Part shown: positions 119-64,000 of the stretch, piece after piece
Layout of the letters: each line of letters starts with the position of its first letter
Position numbering within the stretch: position 1 is the stretch's first letter
Assembly: GCA_020137815.1 (NCBI GenBank)
Contig: CM035357.1
Coordinates: 1,798,001 to 1,862,000, forward strand
Direction of reading: 5' to 3'
DNA from: Hormiphora californensis
Lineage: Eukaryota > Animalia > Ctenophora
DNA length: 64,000 bases
The notes under the pieces: generated by a model
What the model was told of the DNA's origin: nothing
Seen by the model: the letters and a program-made list of their open reading frames with translations, nothing else
Databases searched by the model: none
Translations under genes and position numbers: made by a program

Positions 119-953
119 ATGTCCTCTCCCAGTATCTGTGAAGTAGGTAGCCGCCTCGTCCAGGAGTACACCACTAAAACTCCCCAGAAACTGAAACTTA
201 TCGATGCCTATTTGGGGTAAGTACACTTGAATCCCTGGACCGCAAAGTTGTTTTGGGAGTTGGAAGAAGGTCGGAAGAGGGCGGTGTTAGAAAAGACCTA
301 AAATATATATGGTGGGGATAGAACCAGAAAAGGACAACGCATCATTCTAAGAACGGGTCGGTTTAATTAACCCATTATCTTCCCCTCCCACAGATACATC
401 ATGGTAACAGGAATTATCCAGTTTATCTACTGTTGTCTAGTCGGTACTTTCCCCTTCAACTCCTTCCTATCTGGCTTCATCTCAACTGTGGCCAGCTTCA
501 TTCTTGGAGGTAAGTTTTTAGATAAATCCTGGTTTTGCCACGACTATCACTGATAGTTGATACCTTTCCCGAAAACATCTTCAATTATCCATAAAGTCCA
601 TATTTTTTCAATTGTTCCCCCAAACTCATGAAATTGTGAAATTTGAAGTTTTGTTGTGCACACCACACGTTAACATGTAATAAGCGTGCAAAACAAATCT
701 GCACACTAATTTAGGGGGGAACAGTTGAAAAAAATGGAGAATACTTCAATTTATAGCTTTACTTTAGTTCTAAATTTTTTAACCAAATCTCCCTCCACTA
801 AACAAATCTCCCTCCACTTCAGTATGTCTGAGGATCCAGGTGAATCCCGCCAACAACATCGTCTTCAAGGACATCTCAGTGGAGAGGGCCTTTGCTGATT
901 TTATCTTTGCTCATGGTGTCCTGCATCTAGTTGTCCTCAACTTCATCGGTTAA
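119..953 (+). CDS. DAD1: Defender against cell death 1 (oligosaccharyltransferase subunit); exons 119-216, 394-509, 823-953
   Basis: Spliced translation [80 protein letters not shown]...[23 protein letters not shown]; GT-AG introns keep the frame. Confidence 0.97.
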
Positions 954-1354
954 TTATCGGTTAACTATCGGTTAACTATCGGTTAATTATCGGAGATAAT
1001 ATCTTAGAGCCTGGACTATCTCCTTGGGGAAAGAGTTGAACTCTCTCAGAGCATTTATTTTTATTTTGCCATATAATTTAAAGTTGACAGTTATAAAGTA
1101 TGTGTATGAACGATTGCTTGTGATTGTCTTGAGAAGAAAACATGTTTGAGAAATTTCACTTGTTTCCATTCTTACACGTCCCACCCGGTATAAACTTTCA
1201 GAAAATCCCCCCCCCCTCATCATGGCGAACAAAACTATACCGAATCGGGTTGGTCTGATTTTGTTCGTTATGGCGGAGGGTTACCTACAAACAGCCCCGT
1301 CAACTCCTCTCCTCCAACACCCCATTCTAGTTACTCTCCTTCTCTTGTAGTACC

Positions 1355-2053
1355 ATGGTCATGTCAGAGGAAGGCCAGGGTTCAGATGACCAACCTCGAA
1401 AGAGACTAAAGTTCAGATGTTACAAACCGGCTGATGAAACACTGCAGGACCGGCAGGTAAGTTGTAACTATGATAACAATGTGGTAACCATGGTCACATT
1501 ATTGTGGGCTGGACGCTGTGGTTTGTCATTCAATTAACAGATTTGTGGCAATTATTGGGCCCGTATTGCATTGTGTTCCTCGACCCTTGCTGTATCTAAA
1601 TCCCTGGATTTTTATCGGTTTTGTTCCACTGATTCCCAAAATCTAAAGACCAGCCTTTCATCAGTATCAACTTTTTTTCCACCAGATTGCACCTGCCTCA
1701 TCTCTCTCGGTTGATTCTGAGGTGAAGAAGATAGTTGAAGAATCCAAGATAGCTGGTTCGGCAGAGATCGACCTCAACGCACTAGCTCCCAGGTAAAATT
1801 TGTACTTTACCTCTCTGAAAACTTCACGATCTAATCAGAATATATTATTCTATGAAGACCTATAGTGTATACTGTATAGTCCATACCATCATTTTCTAAT
1901 ACTATTTCTCCATATATTCCCAGAAAAGAGAACTGGGATCTGAAGAGGGATGTCGAGAAGAAACTGGCCAAGTTGGAGAAGAGAACAAAGAGATCCATGG
2001 CAGAGATGATTCGAGAGAAACTGAAATCAGAAAACTCACTTTCTGCTGATTGA
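1355..2053 (+). CDS. CCDC12: CCDC12/Cwf18 spliceosomal protein; exons 1355-1456, 1686-1792, 1924-2053
   Basis: LKFRCYKP motif and DLNALAPRKENWDLKRDVEKKLAKLEKRTKRSMAEMIREKL resemble the Cwf18 family; GT-AG introns. Confidence 0.92.
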
Positions 2054-2548
2054 TGTAACTTGATAGATATCTTCACCACCAAACTAAAACAATCTCTATT
2101 TAACGCCCGACACAGAAAGTATATATCTATTTTTATTTGTTTCCTATATCATTGACCGTTTTTATCCCATAAAGATTTGAGTTTTGGACCTTTTTGCCTC
2201 ACTCCTTTCTCTCCCCGAGCGATGATTTCTCTGTTCACTCTCGCCAACGCGGCCACTCTTTTCTTGAATGTGACGCGCCGTGGTTTCAATATGCGGGGAG
2301 TTCAAGTCGTCAGCACTCGACTGACGTATCTGGCTGTAACGCGAGCAAATGTAAACCGCGGCGCTCTCTGTTTCAGTTTTCAAGTCCGATTTATGAGTTT
2401 GATTCTGAGCTGTGCCTTGTGGTTTGTTGTGAGTTTGAGTTTTGATGGGGTTTTGCCACGTCGTTCACTGCTCAGGCCCTTGATCCGTCATTAAAAGCTC
2501 GAAGTGTACCCCAAAAATTAATCCCAACTCCCCGATTAGGTTTTTAGG

Positions 2549-3235
2549 ATGGAAGGAACAGTGCAGTTTGTTCAAACAACACGTGGAAACGATAAAATAT
2601 TCCGCGTTCTTCAATACTCCCTCCGATACTTCATCGCCAAAGGACTGACATGTCGTCAAATTAGCTCCCTAGAACATCACATCACATTAGCAAGGAAAAT
2701 AGCACGAACAACACGAGATTTTGAGTATTTTCAGAAAGGTTTGGTTGCCATTGGTAACCCAGATAAAATAGAGGCTGTTGGTAGAACGGTTGCAGCATTT
2801 GGGAAGTGTTGCTGGTTACTGACTGATCATATTGACCTGTTGTACCGGATAGGAGTGATGTCATCTAAATCGGGTAGCCCTGTATCAAAATGGTCGAAGA
2901 TATCGAACTGGTTGTGGTTGTTGGGTTATCTGGGTTCAATATTACTCTACCTTCGACAGCTTTCAATAGTCGAGGATCAAATACTTGAGGCACAGAGGAC
3001 GTTTATTGGAAATGGACTTGCCGAGTCAATTAATGAGGAAGAGACAGATGTACAGGTGGTAGAGCTGGACAAATTAAAAGAATTAAGATCCTCGATTTGG
3101 GTCGATGTGATACGAGAGTTATTGGACTGTGGAATTCCAGCGGGATCTCTGGGATTAATGTCAATGTCGAGTGGTAGTTTTGCTGGAGTTCTCTCTTCTT
3201 GTGTAGGAGCCTACCAAGTCAATAAATCTTTATAA
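2549..3235 (+). CDS. PEX11: Peroxisomal biogenesis factor 11, single exon
   Basis: 228-aa ORF with N-terminal GNDKIFRVLQY, ARKIAR, WLLTDHI and a C-terminal GVLSS hydrophobic segment typical of PEX11. Confidence 0.9.
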   Translation: MEGTVQFVQTTRGNDKIFRVLQYSLRYFIAKGLTCRQISSLEHHITLARKIARTTRDFEYFQKGLVAIGNPDKIEAVGRTVAAFGKCCWLLTDHIDLLYRIGVMSSKSGSPVSKWSKISNWLWLLGYLGSILLYLRQLSIVEDQILEAQRTFIGNGLAESINEEETDVQVVELDKLKELRSSIWVDVIRELLDCGIPAGSLGLMSMSSGSFAGVLSSCVGAYQVNKSL

Positions 3236-3728
3236 AATATTATGTTAATTTACTTTTGCTAGGTTTTGTGAATAAGATTTGTTGAATATATATTCTTTGT
3301 GACGTTTTCTGAGTTGTAGAGTTTTCCAAATTACTCCATTTATATGCAATGGTTTTATCTGTGGGTTGTTGTTATCTTGACATACGTAACTGGAAACCTG
3401 GACTTATCAGCTGCTGAGGTGGACCTCTGCAGTCTCTCCTCAAAAGTGTATTTTATAGTTTTATTCCCCCCTCCCCCGCCACTGCAACTTCCCTCTGACC
3501 ACCGGCACCCTGAATATATGTGTTATTTGTAGCTCCCGTTTACCAACCAATATACTAGATATTTTAACCAATCTACAGATATTGAACTGTACACAGTGTG
3601 ATGGTACCAAATATCTCGATATTTGGTGCCATCACACTGTGTTCCTGCTCTCGCCTCCTGACTAGACGATTGAGCTCTCTCCACTGTTTGTACTAACTCA
3701 CTCTCTATTTATAGCAAAGTGAGGCAAA

Positions 3729-6700
3729 ATGAGTATCCAGTGGGTTCTTGTTTCAGGGTTCCTCTACTCGGAGATTGCCCTGGCCCTTCTCCTTTCTCTT
3801 CCTTTCATCTCTGCCAAGAGGTTAGTTGTAATGAGAGATTGCCCTTCTCCTTTCCCTTCCTTTCATCTCTGCCAAGAGGTTAGTTGTAATGAGAGATTGT
3901 CCTGGTCCTTCTCCTTTCCCTTCCTTTCATCTCTGCCAAGAGGTTAGTTGTAATGAGAGATTGCCCTTTTCCTTCTCCTTTCCCTTCCCTTCATCTCTGC
4001 CAAGAGGTTAGTTGTAATGAGAGATTGCCCTTCTCCTTTCTCTTCCTTTCATCTCTGCCAAGAGGTTAGTTGTAATGAGAGATTGCCTTGGCCCTTCTCC
4101 TTTCCCTTCCTTTCATCTCTGCCAAGAGGTTAGTTGTAATGAGAGATTGCCCTGGCCCTTCTCCTTTCTCTTCCTTTCATCTCTGCCAAGAGGTTAGTTG
4201 TAATGAGAGATTGCCAAGAGGTTAGTTGTAATGAGAGATTGGCCTGGCCCTTCTCCTTTCCCTTCCTTTCATCTCTGCCAAGAGGTTAGTTGTAATGAGA
4301 GATTGCCCTGGCTCTTCTCCTTTCCCTTCCTTTCATCTCTGCCAAGAGGTTAGTTGTAATGAGAGATTGCCAAGAGGTTAGTTGTAATGAGAGATTGCCC
4401 TGGCCCTGCTCCTTTCTCTTCCTTTCATCTCTGCCAAGAGGTTAGTATTGTCAATACCCAATTGAGAGATTGAATGAAGATTGCCCTTATTATTATTATT
4501 GTGCTCGGCAACTTGATCTTGAGAGAAGGATGCTTTTGATTTGCTGGTGACAGTCAATTCGAAATATGACAGTCACGTCTGTAAATTGAGACAAGAATTC
4601 GTGAGAATTGTACACTGACTCTAAAAATAGAAAAACACCTCTTTATGCCTAATAAGTATGTCCTACTACTACATGAGATATCTATCCCCCCTCCCAGATT
4701 TAATGTATCTTGAAACTATGAGTTGAGGTTGTATTGTTCATACTCGGCGCGGGGGAGGTGCAACAGCACAAAGTTGAGGGGGAGGAGTGTTTAACTAACA
4801 ATTCCTCTTTCCCATGTGTGGTTGTATTAACTGTACCTGAGTTACACTGTGGTACAAGAGTGTTAACAATTTCCCATTTCCCAGGTGGCACAGGATCTTC
4901 AACTCTTCCTTTATAGCTCATATTTCCCATATGTACAGACTACAGTGTAACTGTAACTGAGTTACACTTGTACTACTCTAGTCCACGTGTGTTTAAACAA
5001 CACTTTTCCCTTTCCCAGGTGGCACAGGATCTTCAATTCATCCTTTATAGCCCTGGTGACGGCGTATGTTAATTGGATATTTGTATGTTTCCTGTCTTGT
5101 CTGGTCGTCCTTTTCGCGGGTAAGATATTGTCAGATAATATTATCTCCTTCTAAGTTCTAATTAGATATCTTCCCTTTTGCCCTGAATATTTCCCCACCA
5201 TCAAGATGTATCTCCACTTCCACTCCAAAGTCAGAGGGGTCCTCTCATCCCGATTATATAGCCCCATTATTGTCTCACATGAGAAACAACGATTTTGCAG
5301 TACTAATATTCAATTAAGAACAGGAGCTTTCGACTGATCTATGTCAGACGTCTTAATCTATTGAATTCTTGCTGTGACCTCATATTTTTGGGGGGCAAGC
5401 TAATTCCTTCATTGAATGGTAGCTAGGGACCTCCTGAAACACCAAAAAAAAGTTTACAGCCCTACTCGTTGGGGGGAGGTCATTTCCGGGCCACGCCCTT
5501 TTTAATAAAAAGTGTAACTATCCTTAGGAAAGGAGTAGAGACAAAATTAAGGGCACCAAAATGTTCAGCGTCCTCGCATTAGTGGGGGTAGGTGCCGGAA
5601 TTAAGTCTCTATCTCATCTGGTTAATTAGATAATTGGATAATTAGGTATGCACACAGCCGTTTGAGGGCCATATGGCTATAGCCATGTTAGGAACGGAGT
5701 AGAGACAAAATCAAGGGCATTAAAATAATCAGCGTCCTCGAATTAGTGGGGGTAGGTGCTGAAATTAAGTCTCTATCTCATCTGGTTAATTAGATAATTG
5801 GATAATTAGGTTTGCACATAACCGTTTTTTGGATATATGGCTATAGCCACTTAGGAATGGTTTCGAGACTTTTCACTGGTGCCATTTTGTTCAGAAGAAA
5901 ATTTTAATCTAAGAGTTGTGGAAAAATTTAGGCCCTATCTCTTACCGTTTTGGCGTTATTTGCGGTCAAAGTAGGCCAATTTACTCAATTTTTGGCATTT
6001 TCGGCCAATTTTCCCCCATTTTTTGGCATTTTCGGCTGATTTGACGTTCTTTGACCGCAAATAACGCCAAAACGGTAAGAGATAGGGCCTAAATTTTTCC
6101 ACAACTCTTAGATTAAAATTTTCTTCTGAACAAAATGGCACCAGTGAAAAGTCTCTAAACCATTCCTAAGTGGTTATAGCCATATAGCCAAAAAACGGTT
6201 ATGTGCAAACCTAATTATCCAATTATCTAATTAACCAGATGAGATAGAGACTTAATTTCAGCACCTACCCCCACTAATTCGAGGACGCTGATCATTTTAA
6301 TGCCCTTGATTTTGTCTCTACTCCGTTCCTAACATGGCTATAGCCATATGGCCCTCAAACGGCTATGCGCATACCTAATTATCCAATTATCTAATTAACC
6401 AGATGAGATAGAGACTTAATTCCGGCACCTACCCCCACTAATGCGAGGACGCTGAACATTTTGGTGCCCTTAATTTTGTCTCTACTCCTTTCCTAAGGAT
6501 AGTTACACTTTTTATTAAAAAGGGCGTGGCCCGGAAATGACCTCCCCCCAACGAGTAGGGCTGTAAACTTTTTTTGGTGTTTCAGGAGGTCCCTAGCTAC
6601 CATTTAGTGAAGGAATTAGCTTGCCCCCCAAAAATATGAGGTCAAGCCGTATTTGACAAGAATTCAATAGATTATCTTCAGCTATGTCCCTCCTTTACAG

Positions 6701-8592
6701 ATTCGATCAGGGAGATGTACGTGTATACGGGTCAGGACAAGAAACTGGACATGGGAAGTGCGGCTGCTCCTTCTGCCCAGGAACATGTGTTGATGAGACT
6801 CTTCAGGGCCCAGAGAAACTTTTATATCACCGGAATCTCTCTCTTCCTCCTCATGTAGGTTGTTGAGTTAGAATAGGAATTTACTAGTACGTCAGGTTTG
6901 CCTGGGAATTGAACCAGGGACCTCCAGAGAGACATGCTCAGAGCTATAAACCACTAAGCTACCAAACCCTATGTACTGATCGCAGGTTTGCTGTATAATA
7001 AATTTGATTTTGAGGGCCACAGTTGAGTTTTTAAGTATTCAATGCTCTTTCATCTTTGATTATTTTATGGCTTTGAATGACATGGATGTAACACTATCAA
7101 TTAATTTCCCTCCCAGTGTGCTAAGGACTATGCTGAGTCGAGTTAGCAACATTAATTCCCTTCTCCCAGTGTGCTAAGGACCATGCTGAGTCGAGTTAGC
7201 AACATTAATTTCCCTTCTCCCAGTGTGCTAAGGACCATGCTGAGTCGAGTTAGCAACATTAATTCCCTTCTCCCAGTGTGCTAAGGACCATGCTGAGTCG
7301 AGTTAGCAACATTAATTTCCCTTCTCCCAGTGTGCTAAGGACCATGCTGAGTCGAGTTAGCAACATTGCCAAACTGGAGGCTAACAATGAAGCTATCCAC
7401 AAACAGGCTGTCTCTGCTGGAACTATGAACAAAACTCTACTCGAGGAGAACTCTGCTCTGAAAAAGGTACATTATACCGACCGAATCAGGAAATACTGGT
7501 CCCTGATTGGCTGATAACCAATCACGTGACCTAAATAACGAGTTCTGATTGGTTGTTTACTTGTTTCGGTCGGTTCCTAAGGTACATTATATTATATAGC
7601 AAGCTAGGTCTGACATTTGGTTGTATGAAGTCAGCCCTATTATAGGCATGATACATCTGGAGATTGTCTTCCATTTTTCTTGCTTCACAAATAAAAAAGT
7701 GCCCTCTCTGCACCGAACGTAGCTACGGCGAAGACACAGTCATGTAGTATGACATTTATTTAACGGTCACATCCCTTATTAATTCCCAATTATTTAACGG
7801 TCACATCCCTTATTAATTCCCAATTATTTAACGGTCACATCCCTTATTAATTCCCAATTATTTAACGATCACATCCCTTCAGCTGAGCGCTGGCAAGGAG
7901 GAACTACTTGAAGAGGTAAAGAAGATCGAAGAACTGAAGGATGCTGTCAAGGCCGCAGAAAGGAGTAAGTTCTGTTCACTGTTCAGATCTGTATCAGCAG
8001 TTCTGCATTTTATTTACTGTTCAGATCTGTGGATTTGCTGTTTTATATCCCTTGCCTTAGGGAGAGGGTCGATCAAGACAAATGTATATTATACCCCGGA
8101 CCCCCGTTAACCTTTTTTTACAAAAGACTCCCCTCCGAACTGAGATGGTGCTAAAATTCAGTCGTACAGTATTTATATCTGGTAACGAAATTACCAACAT
8201 TTAACCTGGTACATATATCTCTAACCAACAATTCCCTCATCTTTTGCAGAAGCGGAAACTAGCAAGGCTGATGCTGATGCGATGAGGAAACAGAGTGAGA
8301 ATCTCACCATGGAGTATGATCGTCTCCTGATTGAGCACCAGAAGCTCCAGGTAACTGAGATATTGATAATTGGTTTCCCGTTAGAGATTCCATGAAACAT
8401 GTGTTGCGTCCTAAATACAGTTGCATTATTTCGTTGTATAGAAATATTGGATTGTTAAATGTTTTGGATATGTTTCTATATGAGGTCTGGGCAGGTCAGC
8501 AGTTAGTCGGATGTATTCAAGATCGGGAATTAAGACTAATGCTTATACCATTTCAGGACGCTTGTATGCCGACAGACAAGAAATCTGAGTAA
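3729..8592 (+). CDS. BCAP31: BAP31/BAP29 ER membrane protein; exons 3729-3820, 5019-5119, 6701-6854, 7331-7466, 7883-7964, 8250-8350, 8557-8592
   Basis: MSIQWVLVSGFLYSEI...PFISAKRW, FADSIREM, MRLFRAQRNFYITG, MRKQSENLTMEYDRLL and C-terminal KKSE (KKxx ER retrieval). Confidence 0.95.
3772..4445 (+). repeat. Tandem array of the BCAP31 exon-1 end plus donor (12 copies of ccaagag|gttag)
   Basis: Unit of about 58-64 nt, gagattgccctggcccttctcctttc(t/c)cttcctttcatctctgccaagaggttagttgtaatga, plus two short 28-nt units. Confidence 0.95.
5356..6672. mobile_element. 1.3-kb fold-back (non-autonomous DNA transposon) in BCAP31 intron 2
   Basis: Arms of about 600 bp are near-perfect reverse complements (atctattgaattcttg...caagaattcaatagat), flanked by TA; each arm contains an internal direct duplication of about 170 bp. 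Confidence 0.88.
6894..6969 (-). pseudogene. tRNA-like / tRNA-derived SINE head in BCAP31 intron 3
   Basis: Reverse strand GGGTTTGGTAGCTTAGTGGTTTATAGCT...CCTGGTTCAATTCCCAGGCAAACCT has A-box, B-box, acceptor-like and T stems, but a poor anticodon arm. Confidence 0.5.
7098..7367 (+). repeat. Five tandem copies (53-54 nt) of the BCAP31 exon-4 acceptor plus exon start
   Basis: ttaat(t)tcccttctcccag|tgtgctaaggaccatgctgagtcgagttagcaaca repeated five times. Confidence 0.95.
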
Positions 8593-9044: not shown

Positions 9045-9300
9045 GGGCGCCGTTACGATCTGGGTGTTTGGAGGCCTGTTTACAGGTGCGCGCTGCGGGC
9101 TGCCAAAAAAAGTTGATTCACTAAAGTGGCTCTAACCGCCAAACCACTCAACCGTTTTGGCTGATTCAAAGTTTATCTGGTAGGGAATGTCAAGGCCTAA
9201 CCCCAACCCAAACCCCCAACCCTAACCCTAACCCTACTTTAGCCCTAACCCTAAAAAACCGTTTGTCAGCACTCCCAAAACACCCAGATTTTAACGCTGG
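9045..9300. mobile_element. Short insertion with subterminal inverted repeats and internal telomere-like (CCCTAA)n
   Basis: ccgaagctgaag duplicated at 9033-9044 and 9301-9312; cgttacgatctgggtgttt pairs with aaacacccagattttaacg; CCCTAA-type units at 9196-9253. Confidence 0.6.
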
Positions 9301-9543: not shown

Positions 9544-13843
<4,300 letters not shown>

Positions 13844-18716: not shown

Positions 18717-18815
<99 letters not shown>

Positions 18816-19813: not shown

Positions 19814-19861
<48 letters not shown>

Positions 19862-25521: not shown

Positions 25522-25962
25522 ACTGTTCCCCTAGAAGCTGTGGTATAGACACTGTTCCCCTTATTTTCAAGTACCAAAATAACTCGTGTTTCCTTTGTGA
25601 CTGTTCCCCTAGATAAAAGCTGTGTCATGTGGTGGTTAGTATTGCTCCTCCCCCTAATAAGACTCCCCTAATAGATAGACACTGTTCCCCTAGAAGCTGT
25701 TTCATGTGGTGGTTAGTATTGCTCCTCCCCCTAATAAGACTCCCCTAATAGATAGACACTGTTCCCCTAGAAGCTGTGTCATGTGGTGGTTAGTATTGCT
25801 CCTCCCCCTAATAAGACTCCCCTAATAGATAAAAACTGTTCCCCTAGAAGCTGTGTCATGTGGTGGTTAGTGTTGCTCCTCCCCCTAATAATACTCCCCT
25901 AATAGATAAAGACTGTTCCCCTAGAAGCTGTGTTATGTGGTGGTTAGTGTTGCTCCTCCCTC
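25522..25962 (+). repeat. 77-nt tandem array of the hexosaminidase 5' acceptor, ATG and signal-peptide start
   Basis: ATGs at 25627, 25704, 25781, 25858, 25935; the first four read MWWLVLLLPLI(R/I)LP*. Confidence 0.93.
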
Positions 25963-50296: not shown

Positions 50297-52885
50297 ATGA
50301 TTTGTACTCGGGCACTGCTAGGTTCGGCCAGGAAGTCCCTTCTGACTAGTACCACAAGGCAGTCCCTCCTGGAGAAGATTCAACCATTTAGAAACTTCGC
50401 AACACAACAGACTCGTGAGTAATATTCAGTGGGCTTTGTATTTTATACAAGAAATCGTTTCCCCAACATTCAACAATGAATATTAACCCTCCGGAATTTG
50501 TCTTGAAAAGCACACATTGTTCCCAGTTTTGGTGTTTTAAAACCCTTCCCCTGTTCAGAGAAAGGGGCGAGAAAGCAGGCTGAAGAGAAGAGAATACTAC
50601 TGTACCAACGAAACAATTACAAGAGAGATTTGAGGTTCAATAAATTCGCTGGATTCTGCATCTGGGGACCAGGTAAAACTATCACTGTATTATTCTCATA
50701 ACTGACCTAGACCACTGTTTAGGCTTTAGGGACAGGGTCTAATCGTTCCTGAAACACGAGTTTCCTGAAACACGAGTTTCCGCTTTTTTATACTCATATC
50801 ATCTAACTCGGCTGTCCCTTTTTATGATCCCCTTCTTCTCTTAGTCTTCTCGGATCATTATTGTTGCACTTATAACACTCGACCTTCGGTCTCGTGTTAT
50901 AAGTTTTCAGGTACAACTTATAGGCATAATAAAATCCTACACTGTATTATTGTCATATCTGACCTAGATCACTTTTTAGGTACAGGGACCATGATACGTC
51001 CACTCTGAAAATAAACCCGAGTTTCTGGTTGTTCACTCTCAGATCTAACTCAGCTGTCCTGCTCATTTTATAACCCTCGGGGGTTATCTAAATTCTAGCC
51101 CCATTCAGGAGTGTTCACGGTGTCCCTTTTTATGATTACCAGTAACCGACCGAATCAGGAAATACTGGCCCCTGATTGGCTGATAACCAGTCACGTGACC
51201 TAAATAACTTGTTCTGATTGCTTGTTTACTTGTTTCGGTAGGTTCCTGATGACCCCCTTCCTCTCGTTCCAGGAGTGTTCACGGTTATAAACCTGTTGGA
51301 TCTGGGTAGAAACTACGCCAAAGTTCCCCTCTTCCAGCAGGCCTCACTTGTTGTCTGTGCCGCTGGTTGGTTTGCTGGGGCCATACTCATCTGGAAAAAA
51401 CAGGTACACAGTAAGAGAAATTACGAGAGAGCTCAATTGTCGGCGTGAGAGCGGTAGAAAGCAGTAGAAAAGAAAGGGAAGAAATTTAGAAGTTAGATAC
51501 TGGAAAGTGGATAGAATAATTCTAGAATGATTCTAGAAAAAAAAAGATTATTTTCATAGAATTGTTCGGTACGATTTGAGATGACAGGGGGTCTACCAAC
51601 CCTCTTGCCTAGCGAGTCTAACTAGTTATCTTCGGATTTAAAAACTGGTTTTCTTATAGGACAATAACTGGATCACCGTTTTTAAAACTTGTGCATTTTA
51701 ACAAATATAACTTTGTTTGTCGTAATGCCCTCAGCAATTCATACCTTTTATCTTCTCTCTATGACTGAATGTTATAATCTAACCCTTATTCTCCTTTATA
51801 TTTGTAAAATAGAGGGTCGAACAAGGCAAATTATAACAGCGTGTCAACTGCTAGTGGGAGACACTAGCGTGGTATGTGCAAAAAAATGTGTGCCACACCA
51901 ATTTCGTTTTTTCAAAAAACACGCAAGAAAAAGTTTTTCAAGATCAACTTTTCACGTTTTGGCTCATAACTCCTGTTTCTGATAAGATAAAGACTTCAAA
52001 CCTTCGCCATTCGATGGAGCTTGAAATTTCCTTTCCAACGGTATGCAAATGATTTCTGTAGCTCATCAGGAACCGGAGATATGATCACTTATGATCATAA
52101 CCGCGTAAGTTTCCTTCGGCATTATCATAATTGATCATATCTCCGGTTCCTGATGAGCTACAGAAATCGTTTGCATACCGTTGGAAAGGGAATTTCAAGC
52201 CCCATCGAATGGCGAAGGTTTGAAGTCTTTATCTTATCAGAAAAAGGAGTTATGAGCCAAAACGTGAAAAGTCAATCTTGAAAAACTTTTTCTTGCGTGT
52301 TTTTTGAAAAACGAAATTGGTGTGGCGCGCATTTTTTTGCGCATACCACGCTAGTGTCTCCCATGACTATGCAGGTAACAACACCACTAGTATATAACAA
52401 GTAATATAACAAGTGCGTGTTCAATTCAGGTACGGCAGCTCGAGTATTTCCCACTTAAGAACATGTTTGAGATAACAACGCTGAACTGGAGAGGAGCTCC
52501 CGTGGTAGATCGAGCTAAACTGGGGGATGTACTTTATAGGGATACCAATGAACGACAAAATAGTGAGTTTCATCATGAGACAAAATAGTGAGTTTGAGAG
52601 ACCATGATTTATGACACAAAATAGTGAGTTTGAAAGGATTTAGGAGATAAAATTGTGAGACTAAAACATGGAAATTGGAATCAGATGTACAATGATATCA
52701 TCATGTACATTTGGGCCATTATACAACATTGACAACAAATCGTGATTCAATATTCCCATTTAATTTCCATTTAATTTCCAGGGTTGATTCTGCAAGTAAT
52801 GGACAGGGATTTTGTTATACAAAAAGATAAGGGTGTTTTGCCGAATGAAGAGACTCTATACAAGCTGACGGGACGAAGAAGTTGA
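50297..52885 (+). CDS. TMEM223/TMEM70/TMEM186-family mitochondrial membrane protein (paralog A), 5 exons
   Basis: Arg/Ser/Leu-rich presequence, ILLYQRN, two hydrophobic segments, KQVRQLEY...FEITT, LILQV...KDKGVLPNEETLYKLTG, recalling the TMEM223 C-terminus. Confidence 0.7.
51855..52343. mobile_element. About 490-bp fold-back element in an intron of paralog A
   Basis: tgggagacactagcgtggtatg...cataccacgctagtgtctccca, nearly fully palindromic. Confidence 0.85.
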
Positions 52886-53895: not shown

Positions 53896-55328
53896 ATGAC
53901 GATGGTGTATTGCAAGTTGAGGGCTGCTGATGGACTCAGGGAGATCCTGAGACGGCGCTGTCTCTTCAGATCTCTCTCAGTCAGTGCTCAGAACTCCGGA
54001 CCAGCACAACCTGCTCAACCAAGACAAACAGCAGCTAAATCGTTAGGTAATTGGACAATGACTTAAACAAAGCGTACTTCAAAATCAAAATGAAACGGTA
54101 GAATATGGGAATCATCTTTAAAAACAGTTTCGTCCTTGCAGGTAAAAAGTCGGTAACTTTATACGAGAGGGACGACCCTTCGAGGAAGTTTTTCTTTAGA
54201 ATGTTCTTTATTCCCGCCCCTCTGGCCCTTTTACCAAAGGTAATTTCTCTTTCTCACATTATATCATGTCCCCCAAACTCGCCCCGTACTTCTTTTTTTT
54301 CATGATACACTTGATTGATGCCATTATTTCGTTACATTTATTTCCTCCACATTATCAATCACTCCATGACTTCCCTGGTGAACCTGCTGTTTCTACTTCT
54401 GCTCTTTATCTCCATCGGTATCTACTATACCTCTTTCTCTGTCCCATCTCTAGACTCTACCCCCACTACTCCCCCAGTCCGTTCATCGGTCTCTACCCCT
54501 TACATGGCTCCCCATCTCTACCCCACTACTCCCTCAGTTTATTCCCTGGTACTATGACATTATTAATGTGACAATGTCAAAGAGTGGAGCGGGACTGTTC
54601 TGGTTCACCTTCGGAACGCCCTTTCTTGTGTACGCTGGGCTCTATGCGTTTACAGTTATCAGCGCACTTAGGTACATTTTGTGAGGAAAAGTAAATGAGA
54701 TTGCTGTACTAAGTCTAAGATAAAAAACGATTATAATTTATAGGTATAGCACGCTATAGCGGTAGTAGTACTTTAAATGTCGGTATATCTTACGAAACTG
54801 GTTTATTATTAGCTTCTTGAATTGAAGGTTTACTCTTTCTTAGGTCACCCCGAAAGGTTGAGCTAGTCAAGACGCCAGAGGAGGGTTTGAGATTGCGGAT
54901 GCATGTCATGTCCTGGCCAGGAAGGTTGACTACAAAAGATCTGGATCCAGGCGCCATGTTCCTCGCTGTGGACAACAAAAGTAAGTTGTGTCTTGAGAGC
55001 CGCACAAAATTAAGTTGTGACAAAGCGGCCCGGCTCGGACAAAGTATTATAATTCATTGATCCAATTAGTATCTTTGAGTGGGCAGCTTTTTGTATCCTC
55101 GCTCTAGCGTCGTTAGCCGTTTCCACTTCTCGTCATGATAAAGCAGTTCGTATTTTGGTCGGAGTTCATTGAATTACCACTCTCTCTCCTTCAGAAATCT
55201 GCAGTCTGGGACACAATCTTCTTTTTTGGAACTACACGTGGGATAAGAAGTATGGGAAGATAAAAAATGCCCACATTCTGACCAAGATAGTTGGCTCGGA
55301 GCCAAGGAACAAGAAAAAGGGCGAATAA
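53896..55328 (+). CDS. TMEM223/70/186-family protein (paralog B), 5 exons
   Basis: Presequence (LRRRCLFRSLSVS), VTLYERD, two hydrophobic segments, RSPRKVEL, WDKKYGKIKNAHILTKIVG. Confidence 0.65.
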
Positions 55329-55487: not shown

Positions 55488-56994
55488 ATGATTTGTCTCC
55501 GAGTTCTCCGGGAATCATCCTATCGTGTTGCAGGCCATTTCACCCGTCGCTTGCTCTCCTCTGAGGCCTACCACAAGGCGAACAGAGTGACACTTTACAC
55601 AGTGTCGTGTGACCTCGGTCGGTGGTATTCTGTTATAGGGATTTGTGCCACTGGAGTCGCTGCATCAGGGATTGTGATTGGTCAAAAGCTCATATCATGT
55701 TAGTACGATATAACAATGTGCAAAAGCTGTCTGGCGGCGCCCACCCGATCTGAGCGCACTTTCACACAATTTGAAAAACAAAACGGCTTAGGCGGCGCCA
55801 GACAGCAGAAAAATATGTACAGTCGGACCCCGATTTAACGGCACCCTCGGGGGAAAGGATTTTGTCCGTTAAATCGGGGTGTCCGCTAAATCGGGGTCAA
55901 ATAATGTTAATTTTCCAAATCGGGGGAAGATTATGCTGCCGTTAAATCGGGGTGCCGCTAAATCGGGGGCCGTTAAATCGGGGTCCGACTGTACTTGGAA
56001 TCACATTTTTATTTTCATATTCTACATTTCTATCGCCAACACGTATCTCCCAGTGTATGATACTGGTGACGTGAGACTCCGTTGGGGATTTATTGGAGTT
56101 GCCACTGTGGCCATCGTAATGCTGAACATCATGGCTAGAAGGTACGAACTAGTCATCAATATCATTTTCAAAAGATAATGACTCATCATCTTTTAAAGAT
56201 GATAGTAATCACATAATCATGTGTCGATGTCCCTCCTGCGCTGTACTCTCTCGTCATTTCGTGCACGCTACGTCTTTTGTTAGGGATGGGGATGTTCGGG
56301 ATGGGGGCGTACGTGCCTTGCCCAACACTTGGTGGCGCCGTCACCTCTCTTACAACGGGCGAGTTGTAAGGGTGACCGTGTCACCAAGCCCAACACTAAC
56401 ACGGTCGCTTGTAGTGGGAAAACGGTAATGGAAAACGAAAGATACAGTAAGACGACGCGCAACCGTGACCAATCAGGGAGCTAGTACGTGCTGACACATG
56501 AACTTTTTGCCACACGTTATGCACCGTGCGCGGCTCCTTACTGTATTTTCATTACGGTAATTTGACTACAAGCAGCACTGTAACAATTTAATTATCCCGC
56601 AGGTTAGTGTTAAGTCTACACTACAGCAAATCAAGGCAGATGCTGCAGCTGCGAAGATTGGGGGTTCTGGGATTCAACAACGTTAGAGAAATGAAACCGG
56701 GGACAGCTAAAATTGTATTTAACTCAAAAAGTAAGTCACATTATACTGCAAAGTTGTGGAATTGTATATGTATGCTTACACTCCGTCTTTTATATTGACC
56801 CGTTCGTCTTCCACACAACTTAGCCTGTTACTTCCACAAAATGTTTTGTATTTAAATTCCTCCTTTCAGGTAACCAATTGGAAGTGTCACACGAATCTCT
56901 GGGTAGCTCTCCAAGTATAATATTTGTGAACTGGGGTACTGTTGAGAACGAACAAGCTTATCATAAACTGTTTGCTATTGTGGACGAGAAGTGA
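55488..56994 (+). CDS. TMEM223/70/186-family protein (paralog C), 4 exons
   Basis: Presequence (FTRRLLSS), VTLYT, two hydrophobic segments with LRWG, RRLVLSLHY...LQL, WGTVENEQAYHKLF. Confidence 0.65.
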
Positions 56995-57142: not shown

Positions 57143-58310
57143 ATGTCAAAAAGAAAGCAGCCCGCCAGATCAGCCAAATCCAATGGCACTGTCAATGAAG
57201 TGCTCGAGATGGACGCTAAAGAGGTTGAATCTGTTGTCCCGAGGCCCTTTATAAAAACTGAACCCATCATAGTTAACCTCCCAATGGTGAAAATGGAACC
57301 GTTAGATGGGGGATTTCTGGACAGCTCCTTTTCTCGGATGATATGCCGTTGTGAATGGTGCGGACATCAAAACATGGGACCTCGGGGTGTGGAGATAGCC
57401 GTCCAAACTGAGCCAACTATAACTCTTGAAGAGGAAACCCAGACCGTGAAAGTGGCTGCTGATTTGGAGTTCTTAGAAAGGCCCTCAGACGTTGAAATCA
57501 TAGATGAGAAGCCCCAAATTGAGAATTCAGAAAAGCCGCCAGAAGTTAACTACAGTGAAGAAATGCCAGAGATTTGCGATGGTGAAGAAGAAAAGCCAGT
57601 GATTGAGGAATTGAATTCTAAAACTTCTGAGATAATCTTACCTCTGGCACCTCCATCCTTCCCACAAAAAGGTAATAACGGTCAAGAAGTATTTCAAATT
57701 AGTTGTGTGTGTGTGTTTTATTTTCCTCTTCTTTCGTAACACTGTTTTATTTTCAGGGAAAGTCAATGTGCGTTTCTCAGGGAAAGACTCTCAGAAGAAA
57801 GCCAACTTGATCCAGGAAAAGAAGAATGTGGTCCAAAAGAAGGAGAATGTGATCCAGAAGGAGAGTGTGATCCAGGAAAAGAAGAATGTGCTACCATCTA
57901 CAAAACGGATCAGGAGCCACCAGGACTGCGCTACTAAAGCCAAGCAAGGGAATGAGATATCCTGTTCCTCCTCGAGTTATATAAATCCTGTGGGGAAACA
58001 TAGAGAGAACTACCGTATAGATGTGCTCGTGCCTTGTGCTGTTGCACCACCCCCGCGCCCCCCAACAATACAACTCGTGCCAAGAAGGAGGGTCTCTGAT
58101 GATGGAAGGATCCACAAATGTGATGAGTGTGGAGCGAGATTTGCTTACCCGAGTACCTTGGTTTATCATAAGAAGATCCATACGGGGGAACGAGGTGAAT
58201 CAGAATACGAGAGCAGGAATAATTGGAGAAAGAGAAAGAAAAATGAAAGAGAGATGAGTAAGACAGAAAGAAATCAGAGAACTTATTCCCAACAGACTGA
58301 GTACATGTGA
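57143..58310 (+). CDS. Protein with one C2H2 zinc finger; exons 57143-57671 and 57757-58310
   Basis: HKCDECGARFAYPSTLVYHKKIHTGER; IKTEP and VKMEP SUMO-type motifs; in-frame GT-AG intron; 3' end uncertain. Confidence 0.75.
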
Positions 58311-58545: not shown

Positions 58546-60895
58546 ATGTTACAAAACCTGATAGTTCGTTACCGGAATATCCTTCAATCACGATGTCATA
58601 ACCTCTCCATTGTTCCAGCAAGACGGTGGTTGTCTAGCACTACAAAACAAGGTAGACAATAATTCCTCTAACTATAAATACCATTTCTAGCTATGATGAT
58701 TTTTGTCATATACCCCTTTTTGTCATATACCCCTTTTTGTCATATACCCCTTTTTGTCATATACCCCTTTCTTCCAATTCGTAATATATACCTAGTCTCT
58801 GCCTTAACTAAAACCAAGATTACTTCCCCAATAACTAAATACTGTTTACTACTACTGCTACCAAGATTACTTCCCCAATAACTAAATACTGTTTACTTCC
58901 ACAATATAACTTTACTACTACTGCAGGGGTTTCCAAATATGGTATTGTGGTGTACGATAATGGGGGAAGTCTAAACCAGGCCAGAATGGCTCGCATCGGG
59001 GCTCTCTTTATGGTCTTTACTACACCCATCTGTCTGATTGCTGGATATGTTGATACTATTTTGAGTAATCCAAATGAAGAGGATCCTTCTATGAAGGTTA
59101 GTGTTGCTAGGTGACATGGTGGTGTTGTGTTGCTTTGCGGGTCTGAGTTGAACTGAATACTCCGAGTTAGCTATATAAAATCAAAGCAAGCTCTACCACA
59201 ATATGTTTCAAAATGTGTTTCAATATCATCGTGTTTCAGGAAATGATGAGGTGGACACTCATCACTCTTACCCTGACAACTGTTGCCGTGAAGTTTAGTC
59301 AGAATACCTGTAGGAAGACACTTACAACCCTCTACTTCAACAAAGCTGAGGGAAAGATCTATCTGGATGCGTTTAGGGGCTGGTTTTGTAAGCCTAAAAT
59401 GTATGGCCCCTACACTCCCTCTATTGGTTAGTTTGTAAACCTAAACTGTATGGCCCCTATTCTCCCTCTATTGGTTAGTTTGTAAACCTAAACTGTATGG
59501 CCCCTACTCTCCCTCTATTGGTTAGTTTGTAAACCTAAAATGTATGGCCCCTACTCTCCCTCTATTGGTTAGTTTGTAAACCTAAAATGTATGGCCCCTA
59601 CTCTCCCTCTATTGGTTAGTTTGTAAACCTAAAATGTATGGCCCCTACTCTCCCTCTATTGGTTAGTTTGTAAACCTAAAATGTATGGCCCCTACTCTCC
59701 CTCTATTGGTTAGTTTGTAAACCTAAACTGTATGGCCCCTACACTCCCTCTATTGGTTAGTTTGTAAACCTAAAATGTATGGCCCCTACACTCCTTCTAT
59801 TGGTTAGTTTGTAAATCTAAAATGTATGGCCCCTACTCTCCCTCTATTGGTTAGTTTGTAAACCTAAAATGTATGGCCCCTACACTCCTTCTATTGGTTA
59901 GTTTGTAAACCTAAAATGTATGGCCCCTACTCTCCCTCTATTGGTTAGTTTGTAAACCTAAAATGTATGGCCCCTACTCTCCCTCTATTGGTTAGTTTGT
60001 AAACCTAAAATGTATGGCCCCTACTCTCCCTCTATTGGTTAGTTTGTAAACCTAAAATGTATGGCCCCTACTCTCCCTCTATTGGTTAGTTTGTAAATCT
60101 AAACTGTATGGCCCCTACACTCCCTCTATTGGTTAGTTTGTAAACCTAAAATGTATGGCCCCTACTCTCCCTCTATTGGTTAGTTTGTAAACCTAAAATG
60201 TATGGCCCCTACACACCCTCTATTGGTTAGTTTGTAAACCTAAAATGTATGGCCCCTACTATCCCTTGTTGTTGGCAATGATCACCAATTTTTTGTCGTG
60301 ATAAATTATGTTTCCTCGGTCCCCAGTCCCCTTCCAGTGGATGGCATCCACCACATTCCCATCCATCACATAATTCAGCCGGACCCCCATTTACTGGGTT
60401 GCTCAAGGAAAAGGGTTTTGCCCAGTAAATCTGGGTTCAACTGTATCCACCTCTGATTCTGAATTATTACTTTCTATCTATTTCAGCATACAGAACGTTA
60501 GAAACTCGGAGAGAGGGAAATGGTTTTCGCACTTACAGTAAGTTAAAAACAGAGCCATCTCCAAACAACATTTATGTTATAATCATGTTTTACAAACGTC
60601 AAACAGTTATCTATATAAATCGTTATCAAAACATCAAAAACTTTTTTTTTCAGATCAGCTAATTTTCGAGCCACATGTCATGTCGGCCCGGTTTCTCTCT
60701 CAAGAGGAAGTTTATGAACACAAAATCAATAAAAACATTGAAGTTGAGGCATCGGACATGGGAAACAAGAGCTTTGAAATCAGGGAGGAGTTGATCACGG
60801 AATACACACTGTGGAGAAAGTTGTTCAAGATAAAAGAAGAGGAAAGTAATGATAAGGAGGCCGAGGGGAAGGCTAAGAGAAAGATATATGATTGA
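58546..60895 (+). CDS. TMEM70/186-family protein (paralog D), 5 exons
   Basis: Presequence (ARRWLSS), GIVVYDNGGSL...R, two hydrophobic segments, KTLTTLYFNKAEGKIYL, FRTY...LIFEP. Confidence 0.62.
59386..60262 (+). repeat. 47-nt tandem array of exon end plus donor (18 copies of ctattg|gttagt)
   Basis: Exact 47-nt period from 59421 to 60220. Confidence 0.97.
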
Positions 60896-60949
60896 GGTTT
60901 TTCGTACTATTTTGTAAGATATGAATCGAGAGTTTTCAGTCATCAATTT

Positions 60950-63618
60950 TTATCCCAATTCGCCCCCGAACCCCCAAACAGTACCTAATTAGTCCACTGC
61001 TACAGAATACAGACCATCAACCTTTTCCAATTTCCCCCAACAATCGCACCACAACTCTGCAATTTAAGAGTCCAAACTCTCTACACTTCTTGGGTCTCAA
61101 AAACACTCCACTCACACTTCTTGTGTCTCGAAAACACTCCACTCACACTTCTTGGGTCTCAAAAACACTCCACTCATTCACACTTCTTGGGTCTCAAAAA
61201 CACTCCACTCACACTTCTTGGGTCTCAAAAACACTCCACTCACACTTCTTGGGTCTCAAAAACACTCCATTCACACTTCTTGGGTCTCGAAAACACTCCA
61301 CTCACTAGCACCTTGGTAGTATGCTGCGAAGTTGCTGGGAGGATCCGGTCTAACACTCCACTCCTCCTCTATAGAGCTATTCTCGTCAAACAATACCACC
61401 TCCCCTGGTAGATAGTCCGCCCTGAACATGGGAAGAATGGTTTAGAATGTACATTGTGCGAAGTATGGTTTAGAATGTACAACGTGCGATGGTTTACATC
61501 TGTATCTGATAAGAGGTTGTCTATTTTGGATATTTGTCACTGCTCTGGATATATATCCTAGTAGTCCTTCACTAAGTACTGATCGATCAGTAGTGAAGGA
61601 TTATGATGTAAATCTTATGATTGGTATCCAAATTACACGATTAAAGAATGATCAACTCACGTTACAGTTCCTGCGTGAACTCCGGCCCCATCATCATCAT
61701 CATCCCCCTGGCTAGCTCCACTGACTGCTATCTCCATACTCCCGAAATCTTTACTCCGGATCAGTGCCGCTTTAGCAGCCCTCACCCCTGCCATCACCAC
61801 ACCGTGCTCTATCTTGGTTGGTGGTTGTTTGTCTCCATGGTAACCATGTTTGTCTCCATGGTAACCATGTTTGTCTCCATGGTAACCATGTTTGTCTCCA
61901 TGGTAACCGTGTGGTGGCAGGTTAGGTAGAGCTATCGCTTCCTCGTAGTGGTTTGTTTCTTTCCTTCGGAAGGTCCCTACCCCGGGCGACCCAGCTGATC
62001 CTATCTCCATCTTGGCAGCCCTAATTCTCATCCTCACAAAGAGTCCGGCTACCATGGCAACCACTGCGACAGAAAACAGTCCAAACATTCCACAGATCAG
62101 TGTGTTTTGTTGGCAGTACCCACAGTCGTCACCGGTACAGGGTGGCTCCGTGTCACCTGCCACAATGGCGTTGGAATTACCGTCTGATCCGCTGGTGTCG
62201 TTGTGACCTGTACCATGACACTCGGTGTAGGTTTCTCCCCCACACTCCAGGATGACGCTGGGAAGAGGACGATAGTGTTATTACAGTTGGACCCCGATTT
62301 ACCGGGGGGGGGGGGCTGACACTGGGAAGAGGGGAGAGTGTTATTACAGTTGGACCCCGACCCGGGGGGTAGTAAACAGGAGTGTTAATAGTAGTACTAA
62401 AAGTAAAAAGTTACTCTTACCCCCCACACTCCAGGATGACGCTGGGAAGAGGGGAGAGTGTTATTACAGTTGGACCCCGATTTACCGGGATCCTCGGGGG
62501 AAGCCATTTTGTAAATCGGGGGGTAGTAAACTGGAGTCTGGCAATTATTGTTGATCACCTCAAAGAAACTAAAATAAAAAGTTACTCTTACCGACATCCT
62601 TCCAATCCCTCTCCTAATTGTGACCATCCACACACTTCAATTGAAACACTTTCCTCGATACCTAGAGGTTTAGTTGTTGAAATTAGAAAATATCGTTCGG
62701 CCAATCACTATCATGGGCCTCAAAGGGTTAAAGCAATAAAACAAACGATGCAAATTGTAGGGAAAAGCCATCAGTGATGGACTGGTTTTCCCTAAAATTT
62801 GATGGTCCATCATATTATCCTGATAATTACCGTCGCAGGTACAGCTGTAATGACCATCATCCTCCTTTGATGCAGATTGAATCCACAGAGAACCGTTCTT
62901 CAGTATCTCCTAAAGATGATCACATTTACAAGGTTCAAACTGATTATCCATACTGTACCCGGCGCCATTCCGGGGATAAAAACGGAACGAAAGTTTCTAC
63001 CTCAAAGGCGATAAAGATATAAAATGTTGTTCTTAAAACTGAATCGATCTTACTGCAAAGGATGGTCGTGTTTTCCATTCAATGTCTCCCCTACAACCCT
63101 CCCCGCACGAAACCAGGGTCTGGTAACCCTCCGGGACGTAGACCGTGGTTTTTAGGTCTGAGACCACCTTTAGGATTTTAACCACTTTCTTCGCTATAGA
63201 GATAATATCGTAATGTTATTTCTTAAAGTGCCTGGGTAAAACACTAAGGAAAAACAGTCGGACCTCAATTTACCGGGATACACGGGGGAAGGCCGTTTCA
63301 CCCGGTAAATCGAGATCAGGCTGTGTCGCTAAAAATGATTTCGCTGGCACTAGTGGAGATCCTAAACCTATACAATCCCCTTCAGGAACCGACCGAATCA
63401 GGAAATACTGGTCCCTGATTGGCTGATAACCAGTCACGTGACCTAAATAACGAGTTCTGATTGGCTGTTTACTTGTTTCGGTCGGTTCCCTAGTCCCCTT
63501 ATATTTGGTATGATATTACTAAGCTTGTCATCTACCTACCTCCACAGCTGCAGCTATATTCCCCGTCGTCGGACCTTGTCAGCGCTTCAATCAGCAATGA
63601 TCTATCTGATTGTTGAAC
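60950..63618 (-). CDS. Ig-domain single-pass membrane protein, 3' part; 5' end lies beyond the window
   Basis: Exons SLLIEALTRSDDGEYSC; VYVPEGYQTLVSC...IEW; ILKNGSLWIQSASKEDDGHYSC; TM segment LICGMFGLFSVAVVAMVAGLFV then RMRIR; last exon tentative. Confidence 0.75.
61080..61306 (-). repeat. About 7 copies of a 31-nt unit starting with the donor gtgagt
   Basis: Plus strand cactccactcacacttcttgggtctcaaaaa abuts the exon end at about 61306. Confidence 0.9.
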
Positions 63619-64000
63619 CTGTGAGAGATTTCATCTTTTGTACAATTTAGGGTTAGTGTCAGAGTGGTAGACATTCATCCCAGTGTTTAGTTATAATAGC
63701 CGGTACAACACCATCCCTATCCTAATCATGCATGTCTCATAAACTGTTGGCCAATCCAATTTTCACTTTTCAGTTATCGGAATGTTTTCAGATAACTACA
63801 CAATATATTATGTAGTTGTCGGTTGGTAGAAACGCTGTAAGGCCAATGCTCTGACGGCTGACCACAGTTCTCGGGCGAGAGAAATGAGAATAGGGTCAGG
63901 CCAATGCTCTGACAATAAAACGCAGATCTGTCAGATTGGGATAAATTGAAAACTTACTGCTGACGGTGGGATAAATTGAAAACTTACTGGTGACGGTAGT

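Follow-up and report, generated by a model that had tools for sequence, protein, structure and literature searches.

The 64,000-nucleotide (nt) stretch of the genome of the ctenophore Hormiphora californensis analysed here (assembly GCA_020137815.1, contig CM035357.1, positions 1,798,001–1,862,000 of the forward strand; hereafter the window, in whose coordinates positions are given) carries DAD1, a PEX11-like gene, BCAP31, PLEKHF2, RFT1, HEX, HSD17B12, ADCK5, a set of paralogous genes (paralogs A, B and D among them), a zinc-finger gene and an Ig-like gene. Along these genes lie tandem arrays whose repeat units copy the exon borders themselves, including donor and acceptor splice sites, a translation start and stop codons. 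Such boundary duplications are dense, with about 16–20 loci among the roughly 200 exon boundaries of the window, and the excess at boundaries is real, about 2- to 3.5-fold, and genome-wide. We read the arrays, with a probability of about 0.7, as minisatellites of the kind called 'mirages' in amphioxus, here in a ctenophore genome and with a birth or survival that is biased to exon borders. Because the genome is compact, with introns of 200–500 nt and an exon boundary roughly every 300 bp across the window, mere nearness of a repeat to a boundary says little.

The published assembly of the species, 110 Mb in size, has 44 scaffolds and 13 chromosomes, with 3.2% heterozygosity and indel-rich introns; spliced-leader trans-splicing is common, and a spliced leader is carried by at least 56% of Iso-Seq reads (PMC8527503). 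Our gene models are our own, namely 101 exons curated by hand in the window and automatic models at 20 other loci, which served as a replicate sample (10 kb each at fixed coordinates on 13 chromosome-size contigs of 6.4–10.5 Mb in the 110.69-Mb, 45-contig assembly). A custom exon-chaining predictor trained on the window reproduces the hand-checked models, and its output was used with manual corrections. A Pfam search across the whole genome recovers few exons per gene and is too sparse for annotation; in support of the boundaries, Pfam searches were made exon by exon, without joined spliced models. The exon boundaries are backed by such single-exon matches: the DAD1 exon from 823 matches Pfam DAD 68–109 of 109 in register, BCAP31 exon 1 matches Bap31 1–29 and exon 2 continues with 32–63, the donor-array exon of RFT1 matches Rft-1 35–90 and the next exon 97–143, an HSD17B12 exon matches adh_short 131–173, and the HEX exon 29696–29851 matches GH20 151–183. 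Repeats were detected with Tandem Repeats Finder (TRF; 105 rows in the window), with a repeat search for two-copy cases, by self-alignment and by direct reading on the gene strand. Every array named in a preliminary description of the window was read in this way, and TRF, repeat search and direct reading agree with the array positions given there; TRF, repeat search and self-alignment confirm head-to-tail repetition of a 10–160-bp unit in the window arrays. In what follows the gene strand is bracketed with the coordinates; all arrays were read directly and were found by TRF unless the repeat search is named.

Donor splice sites are multiplied in BCAP31, RFT1 and two of the paralogs. At the end of BCAP31 exon 1 (3771–4446, +), a 64-nt unit composed of the last 50 nt of the exon and GTTAGTTGTAATGA occurs about 11 times, with 28 nt left in two of the copies, and the real donor GT stands at 3821. 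The RFT1 donor array (23015–23314, −) repeats a 31-nt unit with TTGAG|GTAGG 9.7 times, the exon ending at 23310; in both genes the exon concerned is confirmed by Pfam. Paralog A has a donor triplet (52550–52636, +; repeat search) made of three copies of ACAAAATA|GTGAGTTT, and in paralog D (59385–60266, +) a 47-nt unit, 41 nt of exon end plus GTTAGT, is repeated 18.8 times. At the window end (63937–63997, −), two copies of a 30-nt unit with CAGCA|GTAAGT form a candidate donor array whose exon context lies beyond the window.

Start and stop signals are copied in the same manner. The HEX start array (25617–25964, +) consists of 4.5 copies of a 77-nt unit holding CCCCTAG, a 10-nt leader, ATG and the beginning of the signal peptide, and the final copy is the real start (ATG 25935). 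CCCCTAG is probably a spliced-leader acceptor, and since trans-splicing is common in H. californensis the array is most simply understood as a leader-acceptor junction array. In DAD1, an 11-nt unit ATCGGTTAACT, repeated 4.5 times (945–993, +), copies the last two codons together with TAA (951–953); because the Pfam DAD match reaches 109/109, this array begins at the true C-terminus. The stop array of HSD17B12 (33300–33470, −) is built on a 23-nt unit based on GTAACCATG and starts on the G before TAA (33469–33467).

Acceptor arrays are found in BCAP31, PLEKHF2, RFT1, HEX, HSD17B12, ADCK5 and the paralogs. The acceptor of BCAP31 exon 2 (4828–5051, +) is present twice at a spacing of 134 nt, each copy taking in 33 nt of exon along with its polypyrimidine tract and CAG (repeat search; 53 nt, 91% identical), the real exon running from 5019. 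Before exon 4 of the same gene (7100–7367, +), a 54-nt unit of 16 nt of intron ending in CAG and 38 nt of exon is repeated 4.8 times, and the real exon runs from 7331. PLEKHF2 shows two copies of CTCCCTCAG followed by TACAA (10420–10485, +; real exon from 10481) and, at its FYVE exon (12983–13137, +; real exon from 13127), two to three copies of a polypyrimidine tract with TTTTCAG and some 12 nt of exon, both recovered by the repeat search. The FYVE exon (13127–13313) also has a frame shift near 13190, with HHCRRCGKICCNGCSTKRLLL and SSHNPPEPVRVCDPCFA in different frames; an assembly indel, an allelic difference and a broken gene are all conceivable reasons. RFT1 carries an acceptor duplication (17373–17477, −) whose 55-nt unit joins a polypyrimidine tract and CAG to the first 32 nt of the exon (1.9 copies), and an acceptor array (23446–23584, −) with three copies of a 43-nt unit containing CACACAG and 15 nt of exon.

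The two HEX acceptor arrays are built alike. Array A (29142–29701, +; also seen in the self-alignment) lies before the Pfam-matched exon 29696–29851 and repeats units of 24–49 nt in which an ACTAAC branch motif and a polypyrimidine tract are followed by CAG and GACAT, and array B (30322–30481, +) has the same unit before exon 30477–30622. These two exons are themselves a tandem duplication about 780 bp apart that includes acceptor array and donor. Of the two, the first exon (156 nt) preserves the frame and the second (146 nt) is required for it; they could be alternative exons, or the first a pseudo-exon.

The remaining acceptor cases are mostly pairs identified by the repeat search. HSD17B12 has two copies of a polypyrimidine tract, CAG and 19 nt of exon (34755–34911, −), in an exon matched by adh_short, and ADCK5 has two copies of ATATTTCAG|ATAA at its last exon (45323–45395, +) that are 78% identical and constitute the weakest case. 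In paralog B, CCCCACTACTCCCYCAGT is present twice (54461–54538, +). Several acceptor cases had escaped the preliminary description: TTTCAG with 12 nt of exon, twice, at the last exon of HSD17B12 (33566–33617, −); an exact pair of CAG|GAGTGTTCACGGT 164 nt apart (51106–51285, +), which encloses a miniature inverted-repeat transposable element (MITE) and of which the second member is the real acceptor at 51273; an 11-nt polypyrimidine unit repeated 2.6 times in paralog A (52752–52780, +; TRF), running into the acceptor AG before exon 52782; and a 47-nt duplication (58813–58924, +) in which the TTTACTACTACTGC tail is repeated just before the acceptor of exon 58927.

Units with both exon and intron letters, which multiply the splice site, thus occur at about 16 loci of the window. 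A further group of TRF arrays adjoins a boundary without containing it. The 19-nt polypyrimidine unit in DAD1 intron 2 (780–818, +; 2.1 copies; downstream exon Pfam-supported) ends 4 nt before the acceptor AG at 821–822; the 34-nt unit in BCAP31 intron 4 (7756–7879, +; 3.6 copies), with a TTAAC branch-like motif and pyrimidines and no AG, ends 3 nt before exon 7883; and the 21-nt branch-point and polypyrimidine unit CTTATCTCTAACCTGACCCCT of HSD17B12 (33933–34480, −), repeated 25.6 times, ends 9 nt before the acceptor. The 31-nt unit of the Ig-like gene (61083–61305, −; 7.1 copies) starts 7 nt after the donor CCAAG|GTGCTAGTGAGTGG and resembles the junction. Two more arrays of this group are additions to those previously listed, namely a 33-nt unit in an RFT1 intron (23684–23780, −; 2.9 copies) that starts 8 nt after the donor at 23788, and a 28-nt unit in the Ig-like gene (61425–61489, −; 2.3 copies) that ends 3 nt before the acceptor of the exon ending at 61421. 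In none of these six arrays does the unit combine exon and intron letters, and the splice site is not multiplied.

The preliminary description had held that almost every tandem repeat straddles or abuts an exon boundary and copies the signal itself. All judgeable arrays that it listed do span a boundary or end 1–9 nt from one, although four of them (DAD1 780, BCAP31 7756, HSD17B12 33933 and Ig 61083) only abut it, and the copying of splice, start and stop signals is borne out by reading of the units. 'Almost every' is true only of the larger repeats in this gene-dense window that do not derive from transposons; arrays internal to transposable elements and plain intronic or intergenic arrays exist as well. 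It had also drawn attention to a consistent polarity, in which the copy that keeps the reading frame is the exon-proximal one. This is correct, but it is no finding, since the frame can survive nowhere but in the copy that is continuous with the remainder of its exon, namely the first donor or the last acceptor, and the same geometry follows from any tandem duplication that crosses a boundary.

Association with boundaries was measured against a neutral seed model, in which each array was reduced to a single unit, a seed as long as that unit was placed uniformly unless it was wholly exonic, and the seed was counted if a boundary lay inside it. In the window, a curated boundary lies within 16 of the 24 duplication loci from self-alignment, where 4.5 are expected (P=5e-8), and with non-coding space halved the same 16/24 stands against 8.1 (P=3e-4). 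For TRF arrays (period ≥9, score ≥50, dispersed families taken out, automatic models), 10 of 30 straddle a boundary in the window (4.9 expected, P=0.011) and 15 of 30 straddle one or lie within 10 nt (6.25 expected, P=1.9e-4). Similar results were obtained at the 20 other loci, with 14 of 73 TRF arrays straddling (6.8 expected, P=0.005), 18 of 73 straddling or within 10 nt (9.2 expected, P=0.003) and 12 of 40 self-alignment loci containing a boundary (4.1 expected, P=3e-4). An annotation-free test of the window and the 20 loci together found strong donor hits of a position weight matrix in 34 of 103 units (17.6 expected, P=2e-5), about double the rate in control DNA, and strong acceptor hits in 12 of 103 (6.6 expected, P=0.03). 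Clean replicate cases were also seen by eye, namely a donor in three copies at L008, an acceptor in eight copies at L009 (each unit with CTAAC, a pyrimidine tract and CAG, plus 12 nt of exon), a four-copy donor and an acceptor pair at L012, and a stop-codon array of five copies at L020.

These results bear on the simplest rival explanation, that there is no association and that in a compact genome with such short introns any intronic repeat falls near a boundary by chance. The high boundary density speaks for it, and a seed model with 30% more boundaries brings the straddle-only TRF test to P=0.05. However, the self-alignment excess in the window persists with non-coding space halved, it is replicated at the 20 other loci and in the annotation-free motif test, and, of the eight boundary-free window loci, four end 3–9 nt from a boundary (two others are transposon-derived 164-mers), so that chance alone appears very improbable. 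The comparison with a random expectation that allows for short introns, proposed together with the original observation, therefore yields an excess in the window and beyond it. The same observation had come with two possible causes, a mutational process that targets junctions or selection that tolerates duplications only where they extend into the intron. Tolerance alone is rejected, because it predicts the neutral expectation and this is exceeded; a boundary-biased origin or retention is needed.

Several points weigh against this reading. The excess is modest, at 2- to 3.5-fold, and beyond the gene-dense window the majority of arrays lie away from predicted boundaries. The gene models are self-made, by eye in the window and automatically at the other loci, and the automatic 'straddling' at L005, L007 and L015 probably reflects exons mispredicted inside arrays. 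Detection bias, in which divergence is slowed in a pair of which one copy is constrained, could explain part of the excess. In the sequencing data, a contig joint of the independent same-species sample X5 skips 100 nt at 7754–7855, which, like the depth ratios, may hint at length variation between alleles or individuals but may equally reflect repeat collapse (short-word contigs collapse repeats), and the RNA-labelled run X13 has zero depth on exons and matches dispersed repeats only. Finally, two units each occur at two loci, a 34-mer at L003 and L015 and the 19-mer CAGGTTAAGGAGG at L003 and L006.

The skipped 100 nt, together with the fact that short-read contigs do not span the arrays, is also what favours an artefact, that is, repeats mis-expanded in the long-read assembly. 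Yet the k-mers of the BCAP31 exon-1 array are present at 10–15 times baseline depth in the contigs of X5, the pattern recurs on all chromosomes, and scattered substitutions and short unit variants separate the copies; of all the explanations considered, artefact is the one to which we give least credence. At a matching threshold of ≥90% identity, contigs of a sister species cover exon 2 of BCAP31 and have zero depth over the arrays 3588–4572 and 7134–7330. Runs of a second, related organism share 11–14% of 31-mers, some of which are present in a seawater metagenome too. The depth in X5 and the gap in the sister species together imply that the arrays are not peculiar to the assembly and appear young or lineage-specific. 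The copies of multi-copy arrays that are under no constraint are 90–98% alike.

A dispersed satellite or transposon family with splice-like motifs would be another way to place similar signals at many junctions. The 34-mer and the 19-mer at two loci each would suit it, as would the 15–17-mer CCCGATTTAGTGGC arrays and a 102-bp MITE, which are truly dispersed. However, a search of 264 kb (the window and the 20 loci) matched the unit of every boundary array of the window to its own locus only, as the preliminary description had expected in calling the units unrelated, and each unit carries coding letters of the gene in which it lies, as Pfam confirms for BCAP31, DAD1 and RFT1. Locus specificity and host coding letters indicate local duplications and not a mobile family; a dispersed family is refuted for the boundary arrays of the window and, as a general account, about as implausible as chance. 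As for the two shared units, the 34-mer GGTCAAAGTGGGAAAGTTTCTTAGAGATAAGGAG forms kilobase-scale satellites on different chromosomes (L003:3777–7006 and L015:3443–8712), the 19-mer forms a satellite with CAG|GTTAAGG (L003:9123–9782 and L006:3912–4456), and CTTATCTCTAA is common to the 34-mer satellite and the HSD17B12 branch-point array.

It could also be supposed that the arrays are functional devices under selection, with rows of decoy sites that recruit U1 or U2AF/SF1 and so boost splicing or transcription, or with AG|GT junctions that permit recursive splicing. In size, the first-intron donor arrays of BCAP31 and paralog D exceed all others, GT or AG is intact in the decoys, and 4 of 11 acceptor arrays precede an exon starting with GT, which gives a recursive-site-like AG|GT. 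The other 7 of 11 lack it, and recursive splicing as a general rule was rejected on this count, the motif not being present in every unit. Stop-codon arrays (DAD1, HSD17B12 and L020) have no splicing role, the sister species is without detectable arrays at the same sites, and unit sequences and lengths are idiosyncratic, the high identity of copies fitting youth or homogenization better than constraint. We therefore consider a selected function improbable. The stop-codon arrays, too few for significance alone, further suggest that the cause is not bound to the splicing machinery.

Causation might instead run in the opposite direction if tandem duplication of exon segments with AG|GT proto-splice sites had made the introns and boundaries, as in Rogers' model, which has been discussed for the amphioxus globin mirages (PMC3087553). 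The paralog D array takes up about 80% of its intron, and the HEX exon with its acceptor array is tandemly duplicated, both of which would fit. Against it, units hold genuine intron letters beside unique intron sequence, and both the acceptor-abutting arrays and the stop arrays are left unexplained. The DAD1 introns, whose positions look shared with vertebrates by comparison with the human gene, carry arrays all the same. Overall, reversed causation seems to us improbable too, by a shade more than selected function.

Under the favoured reading of the arrays as mirage-type minisatellites biased to exon borders, 11–134 bp across a coding/non-coding border would be duplicated in tandem, and slippage or unequal exchange would then often expand the duplication, to 2–26 copies in the window. 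The borders copied would be the 5' splice site, the branch point with polypyrimidine tract and AG, the probable spliced-leader acceptor with ATG, and the stop codon, each array arising locally from its own gene. The frame would be expected to persist in a single copy, the one that runs on into the body of the exon, which is the first donor or the last acceptor. In donor arrays, the upstream-most of the identical donors may be chosen by 5'-to-3' scanning, by analogy with human F7. In acceptor arrays, the last of several complete units of branch point, tract and AG would have to win, for which we presume exon definition together with nonsense-mediated decay of RNA spliced at decoys.

As to the origin of the bias, our best guess within this reading, held at somewhat under even odds, is a mutational one, in which DNA adjacent to borders is more prone to breakage, insertion and template switching. 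It is favoured because the arrays are young and homogeneous and because an unrelated MITE also piles up at borders. Detection bias would account for at most about a twofold excess and does not fit multi-copy arrays whose unconstrained copies are so alike; shelter from deletion is disfavoured, since it should enrich old elements, yet the arrays look young. The further proposition that exon borders are true mutational hot spots for duplication and insertion in this hyper-polymorphic compact genome is possible but doubtful. Such hot spots might arise from DNA breaks at the margins of nucleosomes positioned on exons, or from recombination intermediates that stall at a border, the point at which allelic homology runs out. 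If hot spots were real, one process would cover the boundary minisatellites, the MITE pile-up 4–23 nt from donors and the indel-rich introns, and it might explain why amphioxus, the one other animal in which mirages are known, is extremely heterozygous too.

The MITE in question is 102 bp long, with AGGAACCGACCG inverted ends, target duplications of 7–13 nt and internal CCAAT/ATTGG and CACGTGAC motifs, and its depth is enormous in all DNA runs. Copies were located in the window at 7477–7578, 26892–26993, 29851–29883, 30632–30733, 30881–30984, 31170–31251, 32056–32157, 34956–35057 and 51146–51247, and elsewhere at L010:4845–4946 and L011:8324–8425. Ten of 16 copies lie within 25 nt of an exon border against 2.4 expected, most of these 4–23 nt downstream of a donor, and six of the ten are in successive HEX introns. 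At BCAP31 exon 4, the 13-nt target duplication AAGGTACATTATA copies the donor itself. MITE excision footprints were considered as seeds of the arrays and rejected, as the target duplications measure 7–13 nt against units of 11–134 nt and are unrelated to them.

Non-boundary arrays of the window comprise 13 arrays of 15–17-mers internal to transposable elements, two 164-bp transposon repeats and about 10 small intronic or intergenic arrays. Most non-border tandem repeats belong to a dispersed element with internal 15–17-nt CCCGATTTAGTGGC-like units; arrays of this type lie at 10910–11018, 21734–21767, 22498–22545, 23908–23954, 24738–24768, 26418–26521, 28807–28931 and 55863–55987. In BCAP31 intron 2, two-copy 164-bp repeats at 5523–5857 and 6151–6496, mutually inverted and very high-copy in all DNA runs, are probably a composite transposon. 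The 4.9-kb RFT1 intron contains a palindromic region (17700–21200) with the same open reading frames on both strands, flanked by TCTC/GAGT microsatellites (18717–18954 and 19820–20119), and a telomere-like CCTAAC repeat (TTAGGG type, about 10 copies) lies at 9196–9254 between BCAP31 and PLEKHF2. Wholly exonic repeats are in frame, with 21-nt coding units that give HGYHGDK four times in the Ig-like gene (61826–61912) and a K/E-rich stretch in the zinc-finger gene (57819–57890); surviving tandem duplications within exons are multiples of three. The single-exon PEX11-like gene (2549–3232) is 93% identical to EukProt EP00116 Pleurobrachia bachei P009249, with the next relatives at about 50%, a result that rules out amphioxus as the source of the DNA.

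If the density seen here holds genome-wide, hundreds of natural tests of splice-site choice would be available, with identical sites in series and position alone deciding, in a system that also has spliced-leader trans-splicing. Why exon borders breed or keep tandem duplications would become testable with population and long-read data. In practice, boundary arrays can mislead gene prediction and the mapping of reads close to exon ends.

Mirage minisatellites in amphioxus Adh3 were reportedly described by Canestro et al. in 2002. In the amphioxus cases (globins BflGb6/9, PGBD5, troponin C and Adh3), 5' and 3' boundaries are multiplied, splicing is reported to stay normal and the origin has been called unclear (PMC3087553, PMC3902484). 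The arrays of the window resemble them in units that span the intron–exon boundary at either end and multiply the splice sites, in locus-specific units of 10–160 bp and in a highly heterozygous marine invertebrate host. They differ in that the host is a ctenophore and not a cephalochordate, that there are several arrays per gene with up to 26 copies, and that stop-codon and start (leader-acceptor) arrays are also present; the roughly threefold excess over a neutral model shown here is, moreover, a kind of test we did not find in the amphioxus papers cited here. The human F7 intron-7 37-bp variable number tandem repeat offers a second parallel, as its first unit spans the exon 7 donor and the upstream-most donor is used by 5'-to-3' scanning, the identical downstream donors being silent (PMC1557585). 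It shares with the donor arrays an authentic 5' splice site followed by identical pseudo-sites; unlike them, it stands alone, in a genome with few such arrays, and its mechanism was demonstrated by experiment, whereas ours is argued by analogy. Rogers' AGGT intron gain likewise places donor and acceptor signals in series by tandem duplication, whereas most arrays here stand at seemingly pre-existing junctions, with true intron sequence and no new exon–exon junction. Introner-like elements and MITE-made introns also put repeated DNA at intron ends, as does the window MITE at 4–23 nt from donors, but the boundary arrays are immobile and have no common sequence, and the MITE supplies no splice sites. 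We saw boundary repeats mentioned nowhere in the Hormiphora genome paper (PMC8527503), and we found no ctenophore report that joins tandem repeats with splice sites, nor one at this density. The kind of array is thus known, and what is new is its occurrence in a ctenophore, its density, its extension to starts and stops, and the quantified excess. If the density holds across the genome, an oddity of a few amphioxus genes and single human loci would become, in a second, very distant and highly heterozygous marine animal, a measurable genomic tendency.

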